Part shown: positions 6,501-25,480 of the stretch, piece by piece
Position numbering within the stretch: position 1 is the first letter of the stretch
Layout of the letters: every line of letters begins with the position of its first letter
NCBI GenBank assembly: GCA_900088475.1
Contig: FLMG01000909.1
Span: forward strand, 1-45,069
Reading direction: 5' to 3'
Origin: Hyphochytrium catenoides
Taxonomy: Eukaryota; Protista; Hyphochytriomycota
Length of the DNA: 45,069 nt
Made by a program: the position numbers and the translations under genes
The notes under the pieces: model-generated
The model's database searches: none
What the model was told of the DNA's origin: nothing
Seen by the model: the letters and a program-made list of their open reading frames with translations, nothing else

Positions 6501-9157
6501 TCTATTTGATCGGTCTTGAGGTCCATGACTGCTAAGACGTCTCTGAACTCTTCCTTACACACCTCTTGTGCTAGTGAGCCCGCGCAACGGAAGCGTCAAG
6601 TAACTCGAAAAGTTCTAAAGTCGAATGACAAGGGTGTCATCTCTGCTTTCCGCGCCCCAGATCTCTCATCAGTAACGAAGCAGGGCGAAGAGTTCAAAGG
6701 ATTAGAGATGAGAGTCATTGCTGGCACGTACAAGGACATCATAAAGTAGGTACCGGCGTTCTGTCTCCTTGACTCCCATAAGCGACCACCTCCTGCTCGA
6801 TCCTTTGACGACGCCTTTGGTCCATTCATCGTCCACTTGAACGTCATTAAAGATATGCTGTCTTTGTCTCTTTGCTGTCTAAGTCTTATTCCACCTGAGT
6901 TCTTGCACTAACTCTTCCACTGTGTCTTTGCTCTGCCATCCTTCCTTGTGTCTTCGGGTCCTCCTTGTGGTCGATTCTCACTTCTGCAGCAATAAGAAGA
7001 TAACCTCAGACGCGCTAGCGGCTCTCATAGCGTCACATGGAGGAAAGCTTACAATGAACCAGACGCCAAACACAAAGTATGTGATAGCCGCCCCAGAGGC
7101 CACCAACAAGCTTGTGGTAAGTATGTCCATTGCCACGTCAGGGGACAGAGGATGCCGACTCCTAGCAGCATCGGCAGCAACCCACCGCATGAACCTCTTG
7201 TTACCTGTTATGGTTCTTGACCTTCCTCCCGCTGGCAAATGGCGATTGTGGAATCACCTCACGACGCAGTTCTTAGTGTTTCCACTTCCAGTGATCCATG
7301 CCGTAGCCGTAGCTCACCATGGCTTTTCTAATCATCAGGTGAAGAACATCATTCGGAGTGACTCTCACAACATTCTCACCTCCGAATGGGTATTTGAGGT
7401 ACGGGGGATACTCAAGCGAGGGTCCTGACCTAGGTCATTTTGCATCTTTTATTTGTCCACCGCACCAGTGAAGCTCCTTGCTTTATCACACATGGACGTA
7501 ACTCCCCTCGCTGTATCTAGCTTTGCTCCTTGTTGCAGCTTTTAAAGTTTGTTGAACTTCCTTCTGTTTCGTCGTGTTTGCAGTGCATTAGAGAGAAGCA
7601 GCTTATTGAGCCCAAACGCCGGCATTATCTGCACCTCACACGAAGCTCTAAGGAGGCACTGAGCTCCATCTATGACCGCTTCGGAGACCCATGGACCTCT
7701 CCCTCTTCTATTGATGAGATGCCCATTATAATAGCGGAGGTAAGGGGCTCAAGGGTATAGAGGAGATACCTGGAAACTCCAAGTAGCTAGAAAAGCAACG
7801 GAGAGCAATTGGGGGAGACGACGCAAGAGGTAAACGGTACAGAAAGGAGATGGAGGGCCAAGAGAGCCAACTTGAGAATGGAATCGAGACAGAAAGACTA
7901 ACTGCGTATAGGGCGTGTTGCGTTAAGTGGTACGCATACGGAACATATAGAGGACAACACAGTGGAGAAGAGTTATATAGACTAGACGAGCGAAAAGGCG
8001 AAAGTGTGCCTAACAAGTTCACTGTTAACTCTAGGTTGACCGGCTCAGAGAGCAAGGAGAGGTTCCTCCCATACGTCCAAACTGGCGTAGCTACGTAGAA
8101 GAGCATTTCTTGTTAGAGGAGCAGAAGATGCTAGACCAGAACCCATATCTCTACATGTGGAGAAGCAAAATCTACTTTGGTGAGGCTGCTCACCCTCTTA
8201 GCCAAGCGGCTTGCTTATCCTCTTGTTCTACGGATGCGGACCCTAACGTTGGGGCTTCCAAGGGGTTCTCTTGTTGCTCGCTCCTTTCTCTCTCTTATCC
8301 TCAAGTTCCAGAGATTGCGTAACAATACCTAAAGCTAACGAGGATCCTTTCGTATCGTGACCTCCGCTCTTCCCCTTCTCTTAGGTGACGAAGTGAGTGA
8401 ACAATTGAAGTGAGAAGGTTTACTGCTTGGTTGCTTGGTCACCGCTCCCTCTCCTTCGTTTGAGAATCAATGTCGACACGGAGTCTGGTGGCGTTTACGC
8501 CAGAGCATCAATCTCCGCCTCCGTGTTCATGTATCTCTTTCCCTCGTTTCTGCATCTGCCGCTTAGGAATATGGAGAGAATGAATTAGGAGTGCATCCGC
8601 TCGCCTATGAAAAGGATGTGATGAGACGGCGAGGAGCAGCAGTCGCAGAAAATCTGGACAGGTCGACCGCTTTACTTAAGTCTCTCTCCCTCTGCCTGTA
8701 GACCTCTGGCTTCAGACTCTCCAAAGGCTTCACTAATCTTTGCGCAAGGCACTTAATCGCTGGCTCCTTGCCTTACTTGGATCGTAGGTCCGTCACCCAC
8801 GTGGTCCTTGACACCAACCATGACAGGTGAGCCAGTAGGAACAGCTCTGGCTGACTTCTGATTAAATTTGTAAGAGGGGTGCGTGCCCGCACCGGTGCCC
8901 AAGACCGAGAACTATTCTAGTTCGATCTTGCTCTCAAAAGCTCCCTTCTTCCCTCCATTTGGTACGATGATGGACGGTAACCTTTGCTTGCTTTCCGGGC
9001 CAGACATAATGAAATACTTCGATCTGTGTTTGCCAAGATCCGGTCATTCCATTCCGTGAAGCGAGCAGCAGTCGTCTCTCAAAAGTGGGTCAAGGAAAGC
9101 GTGGAGCAGGGGCAACAGCTTCTGCCAGATGATTACATGCTGAATATTCATTCATAA
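548..9157 (+). CDS. LIG4: DNA ligase IV (NHEJ ATP-dependent ligase with two C-terminal BRCT domains); spliced, N-terminus lies upstream of the window
   Basis: Phase-consistent GT-AG exons: 548-639, 923-989, 1169-1306, 1554-1611, 1934-2025, 2255-2368, 2643-2777, 3066-3230, 3528-3590, 3920-4153, 4444-4575, 4785-4841, 4992-5096, 5335-5467, 5743-5870, 6074-6147, 6575-6745, 6990-7116, 7339-7398, 7584-7739, 8035-8179, 8385-8392, 8567-8661, 8788-8826, 9004-9157. Motifs: YPILRLLCPQ (DNA-binding domain), EPKFDGER (adenylated Lys), ILDGEM, YKVFDVV, EGLICK, WIKIKPEF, KVGSGYS, IRFPRVQQIRWDK, YDRFGD, and BRCT-type HGGK..THVV..WV motifs. Stop TAA at 9155-9157. Confidence 0.95.
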
Positions 9158-9480: not shown

Positions 9481-12400
9481 CTATCCCCGAGAATCTTGGC
9501 GCTTCGGTAACTGATCGGAGCCATCTGGCGCAATCTCTTTTCTCCTTCGCTTGACGATTGCTTAGGAAAGCGCTTCCGAGGTGTTGTGAAGGTTTTGATA
9601 AGCTATTGGGAAGAGATTTGGCTCGGTGCAAGGTGAGGTGTTTGAGCTGCTTCCGAGGCAGCTGGGGAAGAAAGAATAAATAAGAGATGACATTTAACAG
9701 TTATCGGATCGCTGCTAAACGCCTGGGTTATTCTGGGACATTGTCCTCTTCATGACCTCCTCTTGAGAGAGGAGGTTGAGCTTGCGCCTTCTTGCCTGCA
9801 ACCAACTTCCCAGCTTTACCCTTTGGCTATTTCCTGGAGACCATGAGAAAGACATCGACAAACCGCCACGTCAAGTACAAGCAATAGCGCTTGGTAAAGG
9901 AAGAGGACTGCGCTACCTGAACTAGTTGAATCTTGAGTTGACTTTTCTGGATCAGTCTGACTCGCAAACGGTGTTCCGCTCGAATCCGCATCTTTGTCCT
10001 GTCCTCCTGATTCGTCACTCGTCTTCAGAGCAGAGCCGGGGAGAGACTTCAAGAGCCTAAAATTGCCTGGTCGACTACCCAAGGTACCTCCGCGGCCCCT
10101 TCCAAATGACTGAGGTTTACCTCCTCTTACGCATTGCGGCCCTACTCCTCTTCCTGCGACTGTCCTATCTGCTAAGCCTCCTGGCTGTGTATGGCCATGC
10201 CTCACGAAGAACTCCTGCATGGAAGGGAGAGATTCCGCTAGGGTGCCATACTTCTTTATGCTACCGCGAATCCATTTAGAGAAATGTGCAGGCACATTTC
10301 CATTCTGATATCGTGGATCTAACAGTATAACTGCGCCGTAGTCATTGATATGTCGGATGCAGCGCCCTGTTGGACAAGGGCCGTAGGAAGTTAGGAGAAG
10401 CAAGCATCAGTCAACTGCGATAGATGCAAAGGAGACGGGAGAATCCACTTCCAGCAATTTATATGACAAAAGCTACCTCACCGATGGCTTGATTCAGTGC
10501 TCGAAAGGTCTGATGCTGGTACCATGTCTCTCCATCAAGAACTGGCCGGCGCTTGCTGCATGTCAAGAAAGGTATTAACTCGTAAGGACAAAAGCGCATC
10601 TTGGGGCTACAGAGCACTATCTAGTCGATAATGGGCGATTCGTCAAATACTAGGGAGAGAGCGATTTAGAGCAAAGCATGCAAACGCGTGTCAAATTGAG
10701 CCAATGGCTGCACCATCAAGGCACGACGATGAGAGCTAGACGGGAAAGCCTGAGATCAAGCACCATTGGATATTCTGATATCTTTTCTTCAGCACCAGTT
10801 GCAGGTCCTTTACGTTGGGATACGGAATGCCGACTACAATTACCGCTCTGGCATTATCATCTGCAAAATCGATGCCCTCACTAATCTTCCCTCTACAAAC
10901 AGCGAAGAAGACAGCGCCTGTTTGGCTGGGTCGGTTTGCGAAAGAACTCCGTCCTCCATGATGTTGCGTGCTCTTACTAGAGTGTTGCTGCACTGCCCCT
11001 CTGAGAAAGAAGGAGATAGACAAGACGGATGTTCAGAGCGAAGTCCAAAGGGGCTTTAGAAGGATGATTAGTGATGAAGAAACAGGTTTTGGTAGGTTTT
11101 CTGCAGTGCTAGAATCGAGCCTGGAGGGTTGGTGAGGTGAAGGCCAGGAAGGAGATAAACAAACATTTTGTTACTAAGGCCTGCGCACCTAAAGCTGACA
11201 AGTGATTCTTCAAAGGCTGCACCGGATTCTCGAGGCTCAATCATCAAAAGCTTCCTTGCTGCCATCCGAGACCATAGCCCTATAGCACAGGGTAAGAATC
11301 AGCCCTGAACCAAACCCAGCTTCTCCTGTTTCAGGTTTAGCGGAGTGTCCTTTCTTTGCTATCCCTCCCAGTCCAAGCCGCTTATCTCTGCCAGTCAAAG
11401 CAACACATGCAAGGTTAAGCTGCTTCGTGGCCTTACCCGTGGACTGCCATCGGCCCTGAAGCTTCTCGATAAGGGTGTAGGATGGAAAGAAGACTAAAAT
11501 TCCTCCTGGAATGGTGGTGAAGTATTGAGCCAGTGTCTCCCCCAGCGCATCTTGGTAATCAAAGCCGTCTTGGTTCTTGTACCGTCCACTGAGCGAAACA
11601 CTTCTAGGACCGCAGGCAACCGACCCTGCCCATAGCTATAGATGGCGAAAAAGAAGGGGATAAGGCCTTTCTTCCATCTAGTCGTACGCAGTGGCCCCCT
11701 TATCCCTTTTAGCCTGGCAACTATTCTTTTCGCCGTCTCTCTGACAGTACGTATTCTTATCACATCTAGCAGATTCTGTCCTGTTTGTTGGCATTCACAC
11801 CGCCGATATCATGAGCTTGCCAAGGCATCCTTCAAGTATTCTGTCAAACTGGAGTTGTAGGCCGCAATAAGGCAGCAGGACACTGAACTAATCGCACTAT
11901 CTCACCTGATTTGCTACATCGATGACGTGGTTGGCCTCAAGCCGCACAGGGAAGTCAACACCCAGCTCTGAGGCAAACGATTCGAGTGGAGAAAGTGTCC
12001 CACTCGCCAAAATAATGGAGCGAGCCTTGGTCTTCAGTTCGGTGAACGCCACTGCTGGATTAAGGCACCAAAAACAGAGCTTGCAGACCCATCGGGGCCG
12101 TCGAGTCGTTCGATCCCACTCCCGCGCCTATTGCGCCATACAAGCAAGACAGTATCAGTAGGTAAAACACTAGACCACAAGACTTGGATGGAGGACTTGA
12201 CCTAGTAAGGTCGATATGGCTAAATATGGGCGATATGGCGCAGAAGATGAGGAGAGTCCACAATTCAGAGCGACCCCAACACCGAAGAGATAATACCAAC
12301 CTTTAGAGCAACCATTCTGTAGTCTGCAGTGTGGAGCCCATCATCATTGAAAATGAAACCTAAGATAAAGAACAAGTTCTCGAGAGTGGTGTACACAAGC

Positions 12401-15975: not shown

Positions 15976-16452
15976 TTAGAGGCGGAACTTGTAGTTCGCT
16001 CCATACTTGCTGTCCCACTTTCCATCTTCATTTTGAAGAGCAACCTCTACATCCCATGCGTTGGCCTTGCCATTATGGTCGTAGGCGTAGAAGAAGAGCG
16101 CGCTCTCCTCCTTGGGAGGAGGATCATAGGTAAAGCAGCAGGTGACATTTTGGATGTCACCGATCTCCTTGTACTCATAGTGGGTATAGTTTTTGAGCTT
16201 GAAGGTCCCTGAGCGAGAGTTCAGCTGAACCCAGGCGCTCACCTTCCCTGGGCTTTCGGTGTGAAGGTAGCCACTGTATCGTAGAGCCACGCGGGGTACG
16301 CTAAAGTCTTTGTTAATGGCGCAGACTTCCAAGGGACCGTCGGTCTTGCACTCTCTCTGAATGGGATAATTAGGCCCGTAAAGAGATGCCTCACCGAAGG
16401 TACTGGCCAGCAATGCTACAGCTACAGTAGCAACGAACTTGAAGAATGCCAT
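15976..16452 (-). CDS. Secreted small protein of unknown function, paralog 1 (158 aa, intronless)
   Basis: Hydrophobic signal peptide MAFFKFVATVAVALLASTFGEA|S. The 136-aa mature part aligns without gaps to the paralogs at 18974-19456 and 22406-22897. Confidence 0.9.
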   Translation of the reverse strand: MAFFKFVATVAVALLASTFGEASLYGPNYPIQRECKTDGPLEVCAINKDFSVPRVALRYSGYLHTESPGKVSAWVQLNSRSGTFKLKNYTHYEYKEIGDIQNVTCCFTYDPPPKEESALFFYAYDHNGKANAWDVEVALQNEDGKWDSKYGANYKFRL

Positions 16453-18973
16453 GCTGGTTCACAAGAGATGATATGCAAAGCGGGGAGTGACTATACGAGG
16501 ACTCTTCTTAGAGATAATGATCGTTGTTGCTTTGGTCCCCCACGGCAATCTTTGGAATGAGCCCAACTCTGACCGGACTCCTAGAAGGAGACTTCTGAGC
16601 AATCTATTACTAGAGTGATGTGCCAAAGTGAAAAGTTCTGTTGTTAATTGATAACACCTCGCAATCTATAAATAACAATATGACGAGCGAAGCATTGACG
16701 GATGGCAATTTATCAGAGAAGGCAGCAGGCAGGGAGCCAGAAGAAATCAGACGAGGGAAGTGGCGCGAGGGCGTTACGACCTATTCTTTTATCGCTAGAA
16801 AAAGGTTGTTGCTAACCCACCACGACGACCTCTTCTGAACCCTTGCTGTCGTTACATTATTGTATGGTTCTTGCCACTCCTCGTCATATCTCCTCCTTGC
16901 ACCTCATAGGGAGCTCGCGTTCTCAGCTGGGGACCTCAACTAGGAGGAGCACATAACAAACCAAGATATACATACATATACATAACATGTATATGGCTCA
17001 GAACCCTGACAGGAGCTTCGAACATTTCTCCAGCAGCGAGTTGGACAGCCGCATCAGCAAGAGAAAAAGAGGTCAAAATAAAGACATGGATCCGTCGAGG
17101 AGATGAAGCCATGTCCTGCCAGCAGGCCTGTTTCCTTCTTTCCTGTCCGTCGGCAAAGATTCTCGTAGTTGGAGGATCAGCCTTGTGAAAGTTATGACAC
17201 ATAAGAACACGTCCAAAGGTCATGCTTGGCCTTGTTCCTCTTCATTAGTCGCCTCAATTCATTCTCTTCCAACGAATCAGCCCGAGGTAGTAGCTTTGAT
17301 GGCCGACTAAATAGGTTACTGGCTGTTTTCGGGGCATTGTTCTCCTGTTTGCTGGAGGGCAAGGGGCTTGTCCTTCCTCTACCCACCCGACCCCACGGAT
17401 CATTGTCACACCTCCCAGGTTCTAGAAAAAAGTATTGGTCCCTCTTAGTATGGTTCGCCATCCAAGACGACGAAAGAGAGAAATGCCTCATTCTTTTGCT
17501 CTCATCATATACATGTATATATATACGACCAATGCTGGTCAGTGTCTTCAGTCAAAGATGATAATCATCAGAAGTGTAGCAACAGCTTGACAGCAGCCAC
17601 TAGGAGGAAGGAATGCTCCGCTTCTGGACTCTGCTTCAAGATCATGAGGAGCTGCCTCCTCGTTGGTCATAATAATCCATGCACTAAGTCAACTTGTTTT
17701 GGCTTTACCAGCAGCCACCCACAAACAAGAAAGAAGATAATAGCACTAGAGAACAACAGAAGAGCAAGTAAGAATAGGAGAAGAACGATAGCAGCGAACC
17801 TCAGCAGGCTGGTGGTGGTGGGACGATGTGATTTATTAGCAATGCACCACCTTCTGCAGCATCCCACCACCACGAGGATTAGCTTGATGCCCTTGTTGTT
17901 GCTTCTTCCTTCTTGGTTGCTGTTGGAGGACGCTGCTGTTCGCTGCCGCTGCTGCTGGCGGGTGCTGATGATTGAGTGGTGATGATGCTCATCCTCTCTC
18001 CCCTTCACTTCCTGCGCTCGCCCATTACGACTCTCTACGCGCAGTTTGGACGGATGATCTGACTGAGGAACCTGTAGGAATGGCGCTGACAGTGATGGCC
18101 AAACCCCCGCACGACCATTCTTCGAGTTTCCTTTAGTTACAGTACGAGTACCTATTCTTGAAATTCGGTCACTTCGCCCCCATCACACAGGACATCGAGA
18201 GTTCATCATGATAAGGGGTGCCGATACTAACGATTGACAACCGAAAATAGAAGATGCAACTACTGCATCGATCCACAGATCCCCCAGGTGCGGGCTCCGT
18301 TACAAGCCGAGTTTGTTGTACTCGGAGTAGTAAAGGCAGGAGGGTACGAGGGGAGACTGGGGGTTTGGCGGCTGGGCTCACGAACAGCCGTCATTCACCA
18401 GCAGGAATGAGCACATCGACTCATCACTGGGATGATAATGGCTTTCACTATTCGGGGGGCGAGGAGGAGGAGGCCACTCTAGCAGAATAGAAGAAGAAAG
18501 GAAGAAGTAAAGACAGAGCCCGATTCAGCAGTATGTGTGGCCTGACGATTGCAAAGGAATAATGGGATAGTAGTAGTACTCATCATCAGAACAGGTTCTT
18601 GTTGGGTGGGAGCCGCCATCATCGTGCTTGCTGCCTTGACGACGGAAAGAACGAAGAAGGAATGATAATGACGAATTACTCATCAACCTAGTGTTCTTAG
18701 TTATTGTGGAGCCGTCGTCCTATGCTTGCCTCAGTCCCAGGCCCCGGCGAACTGATTATACTCATCAACGAGGGTTTGTGCTGACTAGTAAGATGTCGGT
18801 TGATAGCAGCTCAGTCTGTCTGGCTTTTAGAAAGAGGATAGCGATGGTTATAGCAACTATTCAACAACGAATACTCTATCTTGCTTTTATTTTCTTTTGA
18901 AATAAGTAGTGCCAGGACCCTATTTTTATTATGGTGAATCTTGCTCGTCGTTCTTCGGCGGCCCCACGATCAC

Positions 18974-19456
18974 CTACAGACGGAACTTATAGTTGGCGCC
19001 AAACTTGCTATCCCACTTCTTGTCTTCGTTGAAGAGCGCTACCTCTACATCCCAAGCGTTTGCCTTTCCGTTCTGGTCGTAGGCATAGAAGAAAATTGCA
19101 CTTTCGTCTTTGGGAACTGGATCATAGTTCCAGCAGCAGGTGACGTTCTGGATGTCCCCAATATCCTTCTGCTCATAGTTGGTGTAGTTGTTGAGCTTGA
19201 AGGTACCAGAACGAGAGTTCAGTTGAACCCATGCATTCACCTTGCCAGGGGTCTCATTGTGCAGAAATCCGTTGTATTTAACAGACAGGCGAGGCACGCG
19301 ATAGTCCTTGTTGATGGCGCAGACCTCTACGGGACCATCCTGTCTGCAGTCTCTCTGAACCGGGTAGTTTGGTGGGTAGTTGGAAGCCTCCACCGGGGTG
19401 CTGACAATGGCTGCGACGGCTGCAGCCGCAATAGCGATAGCTCTTAGAAAGACCAT
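18974..19456 (-). CDS. Secreted small protein of unknown function, paralog 2 (160 aa, intronless)
   Basis: The true start is the ATG at 19456 (MVFLRAIAIAAAAVAAIVSTPVEA|S), not the longer ORF start at 19684. By hand count, 31 of 136 mature residues differ from paralog 1, and most changes are conservative. Confidence 0.9.
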   Translation of the reverse strand: MVFLRAIAIAAAAVAAIVSTPVEASNYPPNYPVQRDCRQDGPVEVCAINKDYRVPRLSVKYNGFLHNETPGKVNAWVQLNSRSGTFKLNNYTNYEQKDIGDIQNVTCCWNYDPVPKDESAIFFYAYDQNGKANAWDVEVALFNEDKKWDSKFGANYKFRL

Positions 19457-21773
19457 GATAATTCTGGTTCTTTGCAGAAGCGAGAGCCGAACGTGTAGAC
19501 AGAAGACCGCAAGTGTTGGTGAATGCTGGGCAGCTGGAAATTTTTGGAATGAAATACTGAATCCTGGTTGTGTACCGCACTCTGCAACCAATGACGACAA
19601 TGCCCTAGTTCGAGGTGAGGATATGTTTATAGAAGGATGCAGACGACAGAGAGGGTAATGAGCTTGATTATATGGTCCGAGCATAGGAGATCAATTACAT
19701 CTTCATATAATAATTCTATAGATAGTCCCCAGCGCAGAGCGGAGCGAGCAGCAGGAGGCAGGAAGACACGGTTGTGCAGAAAGAGGGCGGGACGGGACCT
19801 GGGGCACGAGGCAACCAAGAAGAGCAGCAGAAAATAAGATCATCATTCGTTCTCATACGATCTCGCAGGAGAAAAGCCAGTAGTAGTGTTACGACAACAA
19901 CAGCCTTTGTGCTGGCTCTCTGCTAGTAAGCCTGCTTCCATTATTGTCGCATCTCCAACTTAGATAGTGGATCCCGCCGCGTGAAGAGCAAATAAAGGAG
20001 AGGACTAGCCCGCGTGTTCGACAAGGAGAGCAGCCTTGCAGGTGCCGCGGGAAGAAGGAGCGAAGGGAAGGAAGGGCCCTGGTAGTAGTAAAGTGCGGGT
20101 ACCTTTTTCTTTTTAGTTATAATAGCAGGAAGTAGTTCTTTCTGCTACAGAGACACACGGATGTTTTCCAGCCACTTCTTCTTCTACATCGAAGTAGTAC
20201 TAGTCCCCACCGGCTGCTGGGTCTTCTGGCCTACTACCATCTCCATCATCAGGAGGCTGGTCACGGATGACCATCTGGATGCAAAAAAAAAGTTATGACA
20301 CAGTAAGAACAAGACCAAAAGTTCCGTTCCTTGGTCGCTCTCCTGCTCCTCCAGCACTTTAATGTGTCGTTGTGCTTGAGAGCCTAGGGAGACAGGGCGA
20401 TACACAGGTGATACGGATGTAGGTAGGTCTAATAATCAATAATAGAACTGCCATCTCAACTTCTAGAAGCTTGTGCTGGCTACTAAGGAACACCGCACTC
20501 TTCTTGCCTGTTGGCATTATCAGAACATTGATGCTTGCCTGCCTTCCTTTTACTTTTCGTCGACAGAAAGACAACTTCTTTGGCCTCCGTCCGTCCGCAC
20601 CCGAGCCCTGGAGGAGGGAGCAAGTGCTGCAAGTAGTGGCAGGAAGGAGTGGAGGGCAGGCAGAAGAGGCATGATGATGATGAGGTCATAGGCCCCAGGC
20701 AGGACGGATGACAGGAGGAGAGAAGGGAGTAGGAGGAGGAAAGAAAGGAAAGAATGGCCTGATGATGACGGTCCGCCGTCCTACCTCCTCCTGCCACTAC
20801 TTTGGCCAGCGACTCAACACCAAGGTAGTGCATCAATCTTTCTTGGCGGCGTGGAGGTAGTAAAGCATCTCCGCCTTGGCCATCTAGGTGGGTGGCCCAA
20901 GAACCGAAAATTATAAAGCAAGGTATACCGCCATGAGGGCCTTGGGTTTCCCTTATTTTGGGCCAAACATGATCACTTGCAACATACAATAGAAATCCGA
21001 CTTCTTAGTAGTTTCGGTCATGGTTAATTCTGGAGATGGAAGGTGGTATGATTGACGCTCTAATTGACTCCATCGGATCCCTCCCCTCCTTCCTCCTCCT
21101 CCTTCTTCGGCGATGATGTCGATGATGCAGCAGCGCTGTCCTGCAGATCAGAGTAGCAGCAGCGCTGTCCATCACTTCATGTTGATGTGAGGCTCCATAC
21201 ATAGTGCTCCGTACTAACAGGAGCTTTGTCTTTGTCTCCAGGTCCATCGGTTCTCCTCCCGTCGTCTTCTTCTTCTGCACTTCTGTCCTTCTTCTACTAG
21301 TCCTGCTGCTTGTCCTGGCGATACCTGGGTGGGGCTACGCTCGGTTCTATCGAACTTCTTTCTATGCGGTTATGTTGTGCCGCAAAGTCTTGTTCTGACC
21401 GTCCAAAGCAAGCTCGCCGACTCCGCATAGATTTCATCAAAAGCTGAGAGCACAAGGAACAGATAGAATAGTAGGGCGGTTGGACCACCTGTCTAACTTT
21501 AATTATTAGGAGCGACGAGGGCTCCAAACTGCTACGGGGAGTCCAAATGAGGTGGGAAGGAAAGAGAAGGGTCGCGATCTCTCCTCAACTGTTGCATCAC
21601 CGAATGAAGAATCTCATCATCACCTTCTGAGGTCACAATACACCGCTCATCTCTTATCCTTACTCGCTTTGTTAGGTCTCCCACTGTCTTCGTCAGGACA
21701 ATTAGGTTTAGCAGCTGTACAAAGCACACAATGAAGACCGCCAAAAGGTAGACAAAGATTACATCTGGGAATA

Positions 21774-21777
21774 NNNN
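21774..21777. other. Assembly gap (N run)
   Basis: nnnn. Confidence 0.99.
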
Positions 21778-22405
21778 CTTATGCGTCGCACTTCTTGCTT
21801 ACTTGGGGTCATCACTGATAGAATAAGGTAGAGAGTATATATAAGACCAAAGAACAGAGAAGTTCTCCCATCGTAGGCTTCTCCGGGCTGCGTAGCCAAT
21901 GTTGTCCTCAAAGTCCCTCCTGATAATGCAAGCAAGATGGAAGAACAAGGACCATACAGGGGTCAGCTAGGCACGAGAGAGCGTCGTAACGGATAAGCAG
22001 TTGAATGCGGCGAAGGAGCTTGATTGCACAAAGGGGTTGGATTGTTAACGGTCTCCTGGCGAGTGGCTCAGGTACTTGCCAGCTGGTCCAGTCGTATCGC
22101 TGCCTCACTACCACGTAACCGTAACTTGTTACCTGTAGGGATTTCTAGGACCTCACACTGCTGATGGTTGGTCCTTTTGTCTCCATAGTCTAGTTCACCG
22201 CCACCCATAGTGCTCACCACTGCTGCCTAGTGACTCCCTTCGATGACCATCTTCTAGAACCTACTTGATCATTTGCTCTGTGTTGCATTCCATGCCCACT
22301 CATCACATCCTTTGAGATGAAGCACCCACTTTACGTTCCTCCAACTAAAGCTAAGTCCAGAGCCACCAGCCTTCTTGTCAACAAGAAGCTCAAAAAGCAC
22401 GCAAG

Positions 22406-22897
22406 ATGATGCCCTACGTGATGAGACATCTCGCACTTGCGACTGTTTCCTTCTTAGCAGCGCTTTCAAGCTTCTGGGTGGAGGCTTCTCTCTATCCTCC
22501 CAACATGTCTCTTCAAAGAGAGTGCCAGCAAGAGGGTCCTCTAGAAGGTTGCGCCATCAACAAGAATTATAGGATCCCTCGGTTGTCAGTCAAGTACACC
22601 GGTTATCTTCACACTGAGAGTCCGGGCAAGGTGAGTGCCTGGGTTCAGCTCAACTCACGGTCTGGTACCTTCAGGCTCAGCGATTTCAAAACTTATCAGT
22701 ATAAGGAGATTGGTGACATTCAGAACGTTACCTGCTGCTTTAGCTACGATCCGCCTCCGAAGGAGGAAAGTGCTATCTTTTTCTACGCTTTTGATCAGAA
22801 TGGCAAGCCAAATGCCTGGGACGTAGAGGTCGCGCTATTCAACGACGAGGAGAAGTGGGACAGCAAGTACGGGGCCAACTACAAGTTCCGCGTATAG
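22406..22897 (+). CDS. Secreted small protein of unknown function, paralog 3 (about 160 aa, intronless, inverted relative to paralogs 1 and 2)
   Basis: Signal peptide ending ...SSFWVEA|S. Shares the cysteine pattern (C-x8-C, CC), AWVQLNSRSGTF, IGDIQNVTCC, and NAWDVEVAL..KWDSKYGANYKFR. The start could be 22406, 22409 or 22421. Confidence 0.9.
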   Translation: MMPYVMRHLALATVSFLAALSSFWVEASLYPPNMSLQRECQQEGPLEGCAINKNYRIPRLSVKYTGYLHTESPGKVSAWVQLNSRSGTFRLSDFKTYQYKEIGDIQNVTCCFSYDPPPKEESAIFFYAFDQNGKPNAWDVEVALFNDEEKWDSKYGANYKFRV

Positions 22898-24248
22898 AAG
22901 AAGCTCGCAGGAAGCCGATGACTTGGTCGTCAGTGACCGGACGATGGCGGTAGACGATCGGAGGAAGGACTCATTACGAGGATAAGGATATTTCGATAAT
23001 AGGAACGACAGGCGTACAAGAGAAGCCTCAAACGTATAGAGTGACAGCTTCTTCCACGCTTGTTGGCCCTCTATATAATATCATTGGGTCGTCGTCGAGT
23101 GCTTGTTACTGCGCGGTGGTGGAGGAAGAAGGAGGACGTCATCCCAAAGATTTCCTCTGGTGGTGCAGGCTACTATTTATCGTTATCATCATCAACATTT
23201 CCTACAATAATAAGAAGAAATGAAGCGTACATGTCAGCCTTATGCTTGAGTCCGTCCTCTCAGACTATCCCCTCTCTATATGGCGGTTAGCCATCCATCC
23301 AAACATTGTTCACTTCCACCCTGCTCTCCTATTATCATCTATTCTTCTCCTCCTCATTTCTGCTCTAGATCAAGTTTGAGTCATTGTCACACCGCTGGTC
23401 CTGATGAGGAGGGCTACTACTATCGCCCTATCCAGCGGCTGGCTTCTACTATGGACTCGACTGCTGTGAGTTCCTGCGTGGTGCTGCAGCTTTATTATTG
23501 TCCGCATCAGCATCAGCAGCAATGTCAATAACATCCACAATGAGACCATTCATAGTAGAGAGCAGGTGCGTGCTATAGTTGTTTCTTCGTGGCGATTGGT
23601 TTGTTCTCAACATACCACAGGAGAAGAAGGCTCGGAGGGATTAAGTGATCTGTCATTTAGACAGGCGGCCGCGGGGGGCAGACCTTGTCCCGTCTAGCGT
23701 GCAATGTTTTGAGTCCTTGACCCGGACAGGGCTTTATTAACCGCCACGTTCCTGATGAGGTGGGCTGAGTGTATGCAGGGTTAGACGAGGGAGGCGTAAC
23801 TTGCTTCTTTGCGCCTTCAATCACTCGTCGACAAGAATTCTGTCATCGATAATCAACAAAGTTTTGCCTCCCCTCTTTTATTCTGCTAGGGAAGATGGTG
23901 CCAACTGGAGACAAGGAAGAGCAACCAACAAGCTTTCTCATTATCAGTAGCTGCCCTGGGTTATTCGACCAACAGGGGGAGCAACATCAGTCTGATTTGT
24001 GAAAACCCAGAACAGGCCATTAAGTAGCCAGAAAGCGCAATCAATTCATTGCTGGAGAATCCACAATCATTCTGCTCACCCGTTAGTCGTGACAGAGCAC
24101 AAGGATGTATCATATAAGAAGCCTCTTGCTGGTTAGGAGGATCAACTGCCGCCTAATATTACCAGCCTGGGAGCTTTCCTTGCCGCCTGCCTGGCCAAGC
24201 GAAGGGAGGGCTCTTGGTCTTCGAAGAAGGAAGTGGTCTGCAATACCG

Positions 24249-24555
24249 ATACTGGCCCCTGCAGCCGTCGGTGGACGGCCGGGAAAGGTTCAGTCTCTCT
24301 ATTGGTGCGATGACCACTTCGGTGTAGAACCCGACATCGTCGATACAAGGTTTAGCGACGCATCCCTCGCTCTCCGTCGGGGCCATATCATTGGTCGCGG
24401 CAGACGTATATTGGGCCTAGAACATTTATCATGGCCCAAGGGAGAGCGAGGGCTGTTTGCTGAACCCTGTACCGATGTCATCGCACCAGTACCTGTAAAG
24501 ACTGAACCCTTCCCGCCGCCGGCCGTCCTCCACCGACGGCTGCAGGGGCCAGTAT
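24249..24555. repeat. Long imperfect inverted repeat (fold-back), about 307 nt
   Basis: 24249-24275 (atactggcccctgcagccgtcggtgga) is the exact reverse complement of 24529-24555. Pairing continues inward with bulges (ggttcagtct/agactgaacc, tggtgcgatgac/gtcatcgcacca, ccctcgctctcc/ggagagcgaggg, ggccat/atggcc) to about 24386/24431. Confidence 0.9.
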
Positions 24556-25480
24556 GTAGCGGAAGCGCCGTGTGATTGACTAATGAGAGAAGCCACGGCA
24601 CTGTAGAAGCCTGGAGAACCTGTTCACTTGAAAAGCGTGTACAAACGCGCTCTGTAACAGTCCATGGCGCGCGAGAACTGACCCCCAACATCTTCTACTA
24701 CCATGAATGCGTGGTGTTGTTGTTGAGTTAGTCGTCCCGATCATCACCACCGTCGTCTGATGTATGAATGCCCAACTCCAAAGGCGACGGCTCCTAAAGG
24801 AGCCTGGTCGACACCTGATGCCCGCCGTTTACTCATAAGGTCGCGTGCGAAGCCGAGGATGTGAGAAGCAGCGCCCGCCAGGCTTGCTCTCCATGGACCG
24901 ACAGGAGGCCGATGGCGGGCTGATGAGTGATGAGGAAGATCTGTCGTTGCGTTTCCTCATCGCTGGTACGAAGGTTACCATTAGAGTCTCCACACCTCCC
25001 CCATGACTGGGCCATCAGAACTCAGAAGTCTGAAACTTCAGAGTAGACTCTGGCGAAACCATCAAACTTACAGGTAGTCTACATCGACTTATATGATAAA
25101 TAAGAATACATCATCAGAAGAATAATGTCAGGCTCGCGACTAGGATTCGGGATTTGTATGATGGGCAACCCCTAATTGAGCTTGGGAGTGCGACAACGGA
25201 GACTGCAGGTCAACAAAGCAAAAGAGACCAAATTGCCATCGCAGTCGAAGATTTTATTGGATTTTTTTCGGGGGCTAGGCACTAGGCAGTTTATCTTGTA
25301 CAGCCCTCTGCCGGCCGTTCATCCCCTCTAGTCAGTCGCTAGGCGATTCATCCTCGGCTTTAACCTTTCGAATGGAGCGATAATAGCGACCTCCCTCCTC
25401 AACCTATTGCCGCCGGACGCCTTTAAGGGGCCAGTAAACTCCGTACCGGCCATCTTCGTCAAGGCGAGAACTTAGGAGCA

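Follow-up and report, generated by a model that had tools for sequence, protein, structure and literature searches.

Intron-free paralogues in Hyphochytrium catenoides encode predicted secreted, stand-alone proteins of an unnamed family related to CBM25

Carbohydrate-binding modules of family 25 (CBM25; Pfam PF03423), such as those of the Bacillus halodurans amylase (2C3V-2C3X) and the starch-binding domain of the Paenibacillus polymyxa beta/alpha-amylase (2LAA), are immunoglobulin (Ig)-like beta-sandwiches. Oomycetes and Hyphochytrium have been described to carry intron-free, horizontally acquired families of secreted genes (Richards/Savory et al.; PMC4447370). Here we describe three intron-free paralogous genes in a 45,069-nucleotide stretch of DNA from Hyphochytrium catenoides, referred to below as the window (assembly GCA_900088475.1, contig FLMG01000909.1, positions 1 to 45,069), whose predicted products belong to a family related to CBM25. 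On balance, we favor the reading that these proteins are stand-alone, CBM25-like glycan binders of an unnamed family that was acquired horizontally and then duplicated.

Each of the three genes is a single intron-free coding sequence (CDS). Copy 1 lies at positions 15976 to 16452 on the minus strand and encodes 158 amino acids (predicted signal peptide, 16387-16452; mature domain, 15979-16386; stop codon, 15976-15978). Copy 2, also on the minus strand, spans 18974-19456 and encodes 160 amino acids (predicted signal peptide, 19385-19456; mature domain, 18977-19384), and copy 3, which is divergently oriented with respect to copy 2, spans 22406-22897 on the plus strand and encodes 163 amino acids (predicted signal peptide, 22406-22486; mature domain, 22487-22894). 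The frame of copy 2 is open upstream to 19684, and its homologues begin at the methionine at 19456. An antisense open reading frame (ORF) overlying copy 2 (18941-19447, plus strand) was dismissed as a shadow ORF. The leaders are hydrophobic and end in GEA↓S in copy 1 and VEA↓S in copies 2 and 3, with small residues at positions -3 and -1. In bacterial, chytrid and H. catenoides members alike, the conserved domain starts directly after the leader, or after a lipoprotein cysteine and a linker. Judged from their sequences, the three proteins are probably secreted.

The mature domains, each of 136 amino acids, align without gaps, and identity to copy 1 is 77% for copy 2 and 75% for copy 3. All three contain a C-x8-C pair (C13 and C22), a vicinal C83-C84, an NVT sequon and the C-terminal tail NAWDVEVAL..KWDSK(Y/F)GANYKFR(L/V). 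A first-pass annotation of the window had listed the intron-free paralogues, the xEA↓S leader ends, the four cysteines, the sequon and the tail, with an identity of about 77% counted by hand, and all of these are present in our alignment. The profile of the family matched copies 1, 2 and 3 with E values of 4.9e-50, 8.3e-52 and 1.3e-48, respectively. Among the three copies, the proportion of nonsynonymous differences (pN) is 0.11-0.21 and that of synonymous differences (pS) is 0.64-0.82, at which synonymous sites are saturated, and the ratio of the two substitution rates (dN/dS) is about 0.04-0.22. These values indicate old duplicates under purifying selection and not chance ORFs. Similarity at the DNA level ends at the CDS borders, and the flanks are unrelated. 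Together with cross-kingdom homologues (to E 1.8e-45) and a confident structural model (described below), this confinement also argues against chance ORFs. The three ORFs are real genes.

Protein and profile searches of the 61-Mb assembly (4759 contigs) agreed on eight family members in H. catenoides. The local amplification and purifying selection suggested by the first-pass annotation were thus borne out, but the family comprises eight genes in this genome and not only the three in the window. Two of the other five members are divergently oriented on one contig (C563), and the remaining three lie singly on contigs C685, C643 and C2564; the C643 copy (204 amino acids) and the C2564 copy (217 amino acids) are the divergent members. 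All eight are single intron-free ORFs that encode a leader and one domain and stand alone. H. catenoides ATCC 18719 was isolated from pine pollen, and its genes contain on average 3.64 introns (PMC5795050).

No match for the window proteins was found in Pfam, NCBIfam or the PDB sequences, in agreement with the earlier view that they belong to no named family, and as far as our literature search went the family is also undescribed. A word-index protein search returned a single relative, annotated as hypothetical, from the chytrid Gaertneriomyces; this protein is the best single match of copy 1 (34% identity). Further searches of this type gave 7 and 3 matches, and the approach was too insensitive for the family. 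An exhaustive profile search recovered 168 representative clusters at E<=1e-3, 74 of them at E<=1e-10. Nearly all of these relatives are 160-200 amino acids long and consist of a leader and a single domain, with S-x-Y-P-P-x-Y directly after the leader; 12 members have lipoprotein signal peptides, which mark the family as present in bacteria. The named eukaryotic members all belong to the Chytridiomycota (Gaertneriomyces, Phlyctochytrium planicorne, P. bullatum, Chytridium lagenaria, Kappamyces, Globomyces and Quaeritorhiza). In P. planicorne, three genes are clustered on one 64.8-kb contig (P0016, P0022 and P0049; tags HDU97_001894, _001906 and _001910), and local amplification is therefore not unique to Hyphochytrium. 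Two metagenome relatives, P0009 (503 amino acids) and P0011 (491 amino acids), carry the domain C-terminal to a leaderless region of about 350 amino acids that has no Pfam match; this region of P0011 shows a CxxC...DH...CxxCN spacing reminiscent of an HNH nuclease. The two could be true fusions or gene-calling artefacts.

Among 401 Myxococcota genomes searched, two carry the family, a Myxococcales metagenome-assembled genome and one more, both in bacterial gene context. One locus lies among genes for a sigma-54 activator, an outer membrane protein and a cytochrome c peroxidase. At the other (genome G231, L011:2104-3513, minus strand), the family gene and a gene for a GH123-like glycoside hydrolase are arranged tail-to-tail, the latter a neighbor that is a possible functional hint to glycan handling and is absent at the first locus. 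A locus search of metagenomes with a narrow alignment returned two loci resembling the same Myxococcales gene (40% identity, same query span), and a metagenome scan for loci with the relative P0005 found none. No copies were found in viral contigs, nor was there a Foldseek match at E<1e-3 in BFVD, and a viral vector for the family was rejected because there were no viral matches.

The similarity to CBM25 is concentrated in the last two strands of the domain. Alignment by hhalign to 36 CBM25 repeats was confident over these strands (97.3%, E 2.8e-11) and colinear across the domain when relaxed. The family profile matched the CBM25 structures 2LAA (E 1.4e-5), 2LAB (E 4e-5) and 2C3V (E 0.067) among PDB sequences, and its distant multi-domain matches are true CBM25 arrays. 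Weak matches to the Pfam CBM_25 model were obtained for 18 of 122 members (best E 5.1e-5). On this profile evidence, the C-terminal WDSxxGxNY strand pair is truly homologous to that of CBM25, and the first-pass annotation had noted that a WD(N/S)xxGxNY strand is typical of the modules CBM21, CBM25 and CBM53. We therefore place the family as a new branch within the CBM25-like group and not inside CBM25 as defined.

In the N-terminal part and center of the domain, S1-x-Y3-P4-P5, C13, C22, Y37-x-G39, an aromatic residue at position 52, N56, F62 and C84 are conserved family-wide, and in the C-terminal part N109-x-W111, A116 and G122-x-W124-D125-S126-x-x-G129-x-N131-Y132-x-F134 are conserved. W124 is present in 95% of members, D125 in 99%, N131 in 94% and Y132 in 90%, and the conserved aromatic positions are 52, 62, 111, 124 and 132. 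W124 aligns to residue 74 of 2C3V, and we take Trp74 of the B. halodurans CBM25 to be its glucan-stacking residue. The other binding-site residues of that module are presumably His26 (in IHY) and Trp34 (in G-x-WT), a numbering that is consistent with our repeat alignment and with the alignment to the PDB sequences. In a relaxed hhalign alignment of low confidence, the equivalents of His26 and Trp34 fall near W52 and F62, which are aromatic in 89% and 80% of the family. These two positions, with the conserved WDS...NY hairpin, would suit a binding site laid out as in CBM25.

DUF6209 (PF19714) is also close to the family (hhalign 94%, E 9e-8) and is its nearest language-model neighbor (0.89-0.92); in an embedding atlas, which contains no cluster of the present family, the neighbors are the DUF6209, CBM53 and CBM21 clusters. 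With the DUF6209 hidden Markov model (cutoff, 27.5 bits), the best E value among our eight copies and one chytrid protein was 0.12, below the cutoff, and 3 of the 122 relatives were touched at E>=0.016. A six-frame search of H. catenoides found no DUF6209, nor was it found in either of the family-bearing Myxococcota genomes. It occurs in 18 of 201 Myxococcota genomes searched, often inside open frames of 500-1000 amino acids; the loci examined were those of G077, G196, G072, G142, G195 and G012 (L022-L027). For CBM21 (PF03370), one member gave an E value of 0.31, and 2EEF matched at E 0.57 over 17 residues.

The mature domain of copy 1 was modeled with AlphaFold2 from 122 sequences, giving an eight-stranded beta-sandwich with a predicted local distance difference test (pLDDT) score of 96.3 and a predicted template modeling (pTM) score of 0.89. 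With 9 sequences the prediction had been poor, at a pLDDT of 65 and with meaningless Foldseek matches, and the 122-sequence model took its place. Superposition with VIA-align matched the predicted fold to the CBM48-type N-domain of isoamylase ISA2 (Z 8.4-8.7), CBM56 (Z 7.3-8.3), betaGRP/GNBP3 (Z 6.2-6.5), the CBM25 structure 2c3v (Z 6.0; root mean square deviation [rmsd], 2.2 A; 72/94 residues) and CBM21 (Z 5.7-6.0), values which by the tool's calibration show an Ig-like sandwich and not a specific family. The identity to 2c3v, 18-20%, is the highest listed for any CBM. The model thus supports the earlier suggestion of a stand-alone CBM-type beta-sandwich; of the structural checks proposed with that suggestion, AlphaFold2 returned an Ig-like sandwich, whose nearest structures by VIA-align are CBMs, and Foldseek gave no match at E<1e-3.

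The best structural neighbors raise beta-1,3-glucan as an alternative ligand. Like CBM56 or the insect proteins betaGRP/GNBP3, both of which superimpose as well as or better than CBM25, a protein of the same fold might bind this or another polymer, in the wall of its own cell or in the walls of prey or substrate, and serve as a lectin that shields or is associated with the wall. Myxococcota prey on other microbes, and the remaining carriers, the hyphochytrid and the chytrids, have glucan/chitin walls, which would suit such a role. The wall of H. catenoides contains chitin (PMC5795050). However, all of the sequence-level signal is to CBM25, DUF6209, CBM53 and CBM21 and none to CBM56 or CBM39, and no PDB sequence match to CBM56 was obtained at E<=10. 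We therefore regard another glycan as an unlikely ligand, though one to be taken seriously.

The weak top rows of the Foldseek search (E 0.01-0.1) also include CrdA, MD-1, FetP/P19 and cytokine-receptor FN3 domains, and VIA-align gave a Z of 6.7 for CrdA. These rows would fit a secreted Ig-like sandwich that binds lipid, metal or protein in the manner of MD-1/MD-2 or CrdA/FetP/P19 and serves in adhesion or sequestration. We think such a non-glycan role less likely, as residues of a metal or lipid site are not conserved. Histidine, methionine or cysteine residues of a metal site are not among the conserved positions; these are aromatic residues, Asp/Asn and Gly that belong to the hairpin of CBM25 type. 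There is also no sequence similarity to those families. We consider a non-glycan role improbable, and a metal-binding function like that of CrdA/FetP was rejected for want of conserved ligand residues.

The cysteines distinguish members of the family from one another. The vicinal CC of the six short H. catenoides copies corresponds, in most relatives, to two cysteines with a loop of 20-40 residues between them. The C2564 copy and the chytrid copies retain this loop, and the C643 copy is without both cysteines. These observations indicate that the cysteines form two independent pairs and that the vicinal CC is what a loop left behind when it was deleted. Some members from bacteria and chytrids also have the N-V of the NVT sequon, and by this comparison NVT is partly a family motif that happens to form a sequon here and not only a glycosylation site.

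Taken together, we propose the following model. The domain is a remote relative of CBM25 and of the DUF6209/CBM53/CBM21 group that has kept the ..VEVAF..G-x-W-D-S-x-x-G-x-N-Y-x-F strand pair. Cleavage of the signal peptide at A↓S-x-Y-P-P would release a small, disulfide-stabilized protein, which may bind insoluble polysaccharide non-catalytically through an aromatic platform at W124-D125, probably with W52 and F62. The relationship to CBM25 and the pollen habitat make an alpha-glucan (starch or glycogen) the likeliest ligand, with beta-1,3-glucan as the alternative. The protein could then serve a saprotroph of pollen and detritus as a lectin-like substrate or wall binder; the earlier label of 'effector' finds no support in a free-living pollen saprotroph. 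Six paralogues, including the three in the window, have lost the 20-40-residue Cys-Cys loop, leaving the vicinal CC. A horizontal transfer, with a bacterium or a chytrid as donor, probably brought the family into the lineage, where it then duplicated into old paralogues under purifying selection.

A careful tree of 80 sequences placed the six short H. catenoides copies in one clade (99/98) and the chytrid copies in another (97/95), with copy 3 as the sister of copy 1 (99/93). All eukaryotic copies fell in one half of the tree (100/99), and bacterial members were present in both deep halves. No unlabelled sequence grouped firmly with any H. catenoides copy; weak pairings were seen only with the C2564 and C643 copies. 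Horizontal acquisition is the likeliest history, and in our judgment quite probable, because the family is spread patchily over bacteria and two unrelated eukaryotic lineages, all eight copies are intron-free and bacterial sequences lie on both deep sides of the tree. A foreign origin, as proposed in the first-pass annotation, is thus plausible: the relatives found are all bacterial, chytrid or of unknown origin. The patchy distribution that it had named as support was observed, but strongly supported nesting in bacteria was not, and trees and approximately unbiased (AU) tests do not settle a bacterial source. An origin from an endogenous CBM25 was rejected, since none was found in the H. catenoides genome by a weak search whose control genomes also gave no match.

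As donors, a bacterium and a chytrid both fit. Transfer from a chytrid fungus to a pseudofungus on common pollen or detritus substrates would agree with the best match of copy 1, the Gaertneriomyces protein, and with the clusters of genes found in both groups. The sequence ends also point this way: an aliphatic last residue and an immediate stop are both present in all six short H. catenoides copies and in 3 of 97 other members, and in the 17-member chytrid clade 10 of 17 sequences have L or V last and 10 of 17 have the stop directly after. This is a soft character linking the six short copies with the chytrids. An AU test did not reject a joint clade of the two groups (p 0.09). However, the free tree never joins them, and joining costs 31 log-likelihood (lnL) units. 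A quick tree instead placed the H. catenoides clade with the Myxococcales protein and a lipoprotein-type relative (Shimodaira-Hasegawa-like approximate likelihood ratio test [SH-aLRT], 92), and the chytrid copies keep the cysteine loop that is missing in the six. A chytrid donor is therefore possible, but we would not presume it.

Vertical descent from an ancient eukaryotic or older family that was widely lost, with genes intron-free merely because they are short, would also be compatible with the AU result for a single eukaryotic clade. In its favor, the H. catenoides paralogues are old, as their saturated dS shows, three divergent lineages coexist, and the composition of the genes matches their surroundings. 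Against it, the named eukaryotic carriers are the chytrids and the hyphochytrid only, which belong to two unrelated supergroups; the unlabelled sequences, as noted, pair at best weakly with the H. catenoides copies; bacterial members are found in each of the two deep halves of the tree; and introns are missing from all eight copies in a genome that has several per gene. We consider vertical descent very unlikely. Beyond a single transfer, we offer tentatively the further idea that this is an undescribed stand-alone lectin family, with its own S-x-Y-P-P cap and disulfide loop, which has been exchanged among bacteria, chytrids and a hyphochytrid living on the same pollen and detritus particles. 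If so, the family would mark niche-driven gene sharing behind a convergent 'zoosporic saprotroph' lifestyle, and its ligand or role (pollen starch, wall glucan) might fall outside the current CAZy families.

The setting of the cluster is eukaryotic. As noted in the first-pass annotation, neighboring genes are spliced: one of them, on the minus strand, has its Helicase_C_2 domain (10266-11530) divided among three or more exons, and the contig around the cluster is therefore eukaryotic. These DEAD_2/XPD-type helicase exons comprise the pieces 10266-10370, 10772-10966 and 11423-11530. GC content is uniform along the contig, and the three copies (GC 0.49-0.51) match their surroundings. Contamination was rejected, since the 45-kb contig carries spliced eukaryotic genes of the same GC content on either side of the cluster. 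Elsewhere in the window, an ORF at 6922-7428 on the plus strand matches BRCT_2 weakly (E 3.8e-5, under the cutoff) and is probably one exon of a larger spliced gene. Downstream of copy 3, at 24361-24455, there is an imperfect 41-nucleotide inverted repeat (71% complementary, 13-nucleotide spacer) in or beside an ORF at 24105-24575.

Several observations weigh against a horizontally acquired, CBM25-like glycan binder. The window proteins reach no Pfam CBM model even at an E value of 10 (PF03423 cutoff, 27.3 bits), and the confident profile alignment to CBM25 spans only 27-40 C-terminal residues. Foldseek with the 122-sequence model gave no match at E<1e-3 in the PDB, the best structural matches include beta-1,3-glucan binders, and the Z values of 6-8.7 lie within the common range of the tool for beta-sandwiches, with FN3/cytokine-receptor domains scoring alike. 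The CBM25 modules known so far are attached to enzymes and frequently occur in tandem, whereas the proteins of this family stand alone (8 of our 8 copies and most relatives). With regard to history, the backbone of the careful tree is a polytomy, and AU tests reject neither monophyly of all eight H. catenoides copies (p 0.37) nor the joint clade with chytrids, at p 0.09 and 31 lnL units worse. Since most of the relatives were recovered from unnamed metagenome contigs, the family cannot be taken to be missing from oomycetes and other eukaryotes. Set against the motif homology, the conserved aromatic residues and the distribution of the family, these points lead us to prefer the horizontally acquired glycan binder with some reserve.

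The present analysis brings together about 170 sequence clusters as one family, for which Pfam and NCBIfam have no model, and gives it a confident predicted fold and a candidate binding site. It widens the CBM25/DUF6209 group from enzyme-appended modules to free proteins that are probably secreted, and the reduction of a disulfide loop to two adjacent cysteines offers a natural experiment in domain minimization. The family also adds a case to the foreign-type secreted genes of pseudofungi, in which this type of event, the borrowing of an intron-free secreted family, is already familiar; that its only named eukaryotic relatives are in chytrids bears on the assembly of fungus-like lifestyles.

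Among described systems, those of Richards/Savory et al. (PMC4447370) resemble this family in being small, secreted, intron-free and locally duplicated, with bacterial or fungal relatives, and we found no description of this family alongside them. CBM56 (beta-1,3-glucan-binding; 5T7A and 6A6C) and the CBM48 of ISA2 give the best superpositions (Z 7.3-8.7 over 75-98 residues; rmsd, 2.4-2.9) but have no detectable sequence similarity to the family and are 4-12% identical in the structural alignment. DUF6209, an uncharacterized family of Myxococcota and Pseudomonadota, consists of two tandem modules of about 115 amino acids, each ending in a CBM25-like LWF..GC.AWDSNxGxNYxF, with cysteines at other positions, whereas the present family has a single module. 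CBM25 shares with the family the Ig-like sandwich, predicted here, and the motif ..(V/A)(E/x)xAF..G-x-WD(S/N)xxGxNYxF of the last two strands. The family differs from CBM25 in being about 40 residues longer, in its N-terminal S-x-Y-P-P-x-Y segment and C-x8-C hairpin and, in most members, in the extra disulfide loop.

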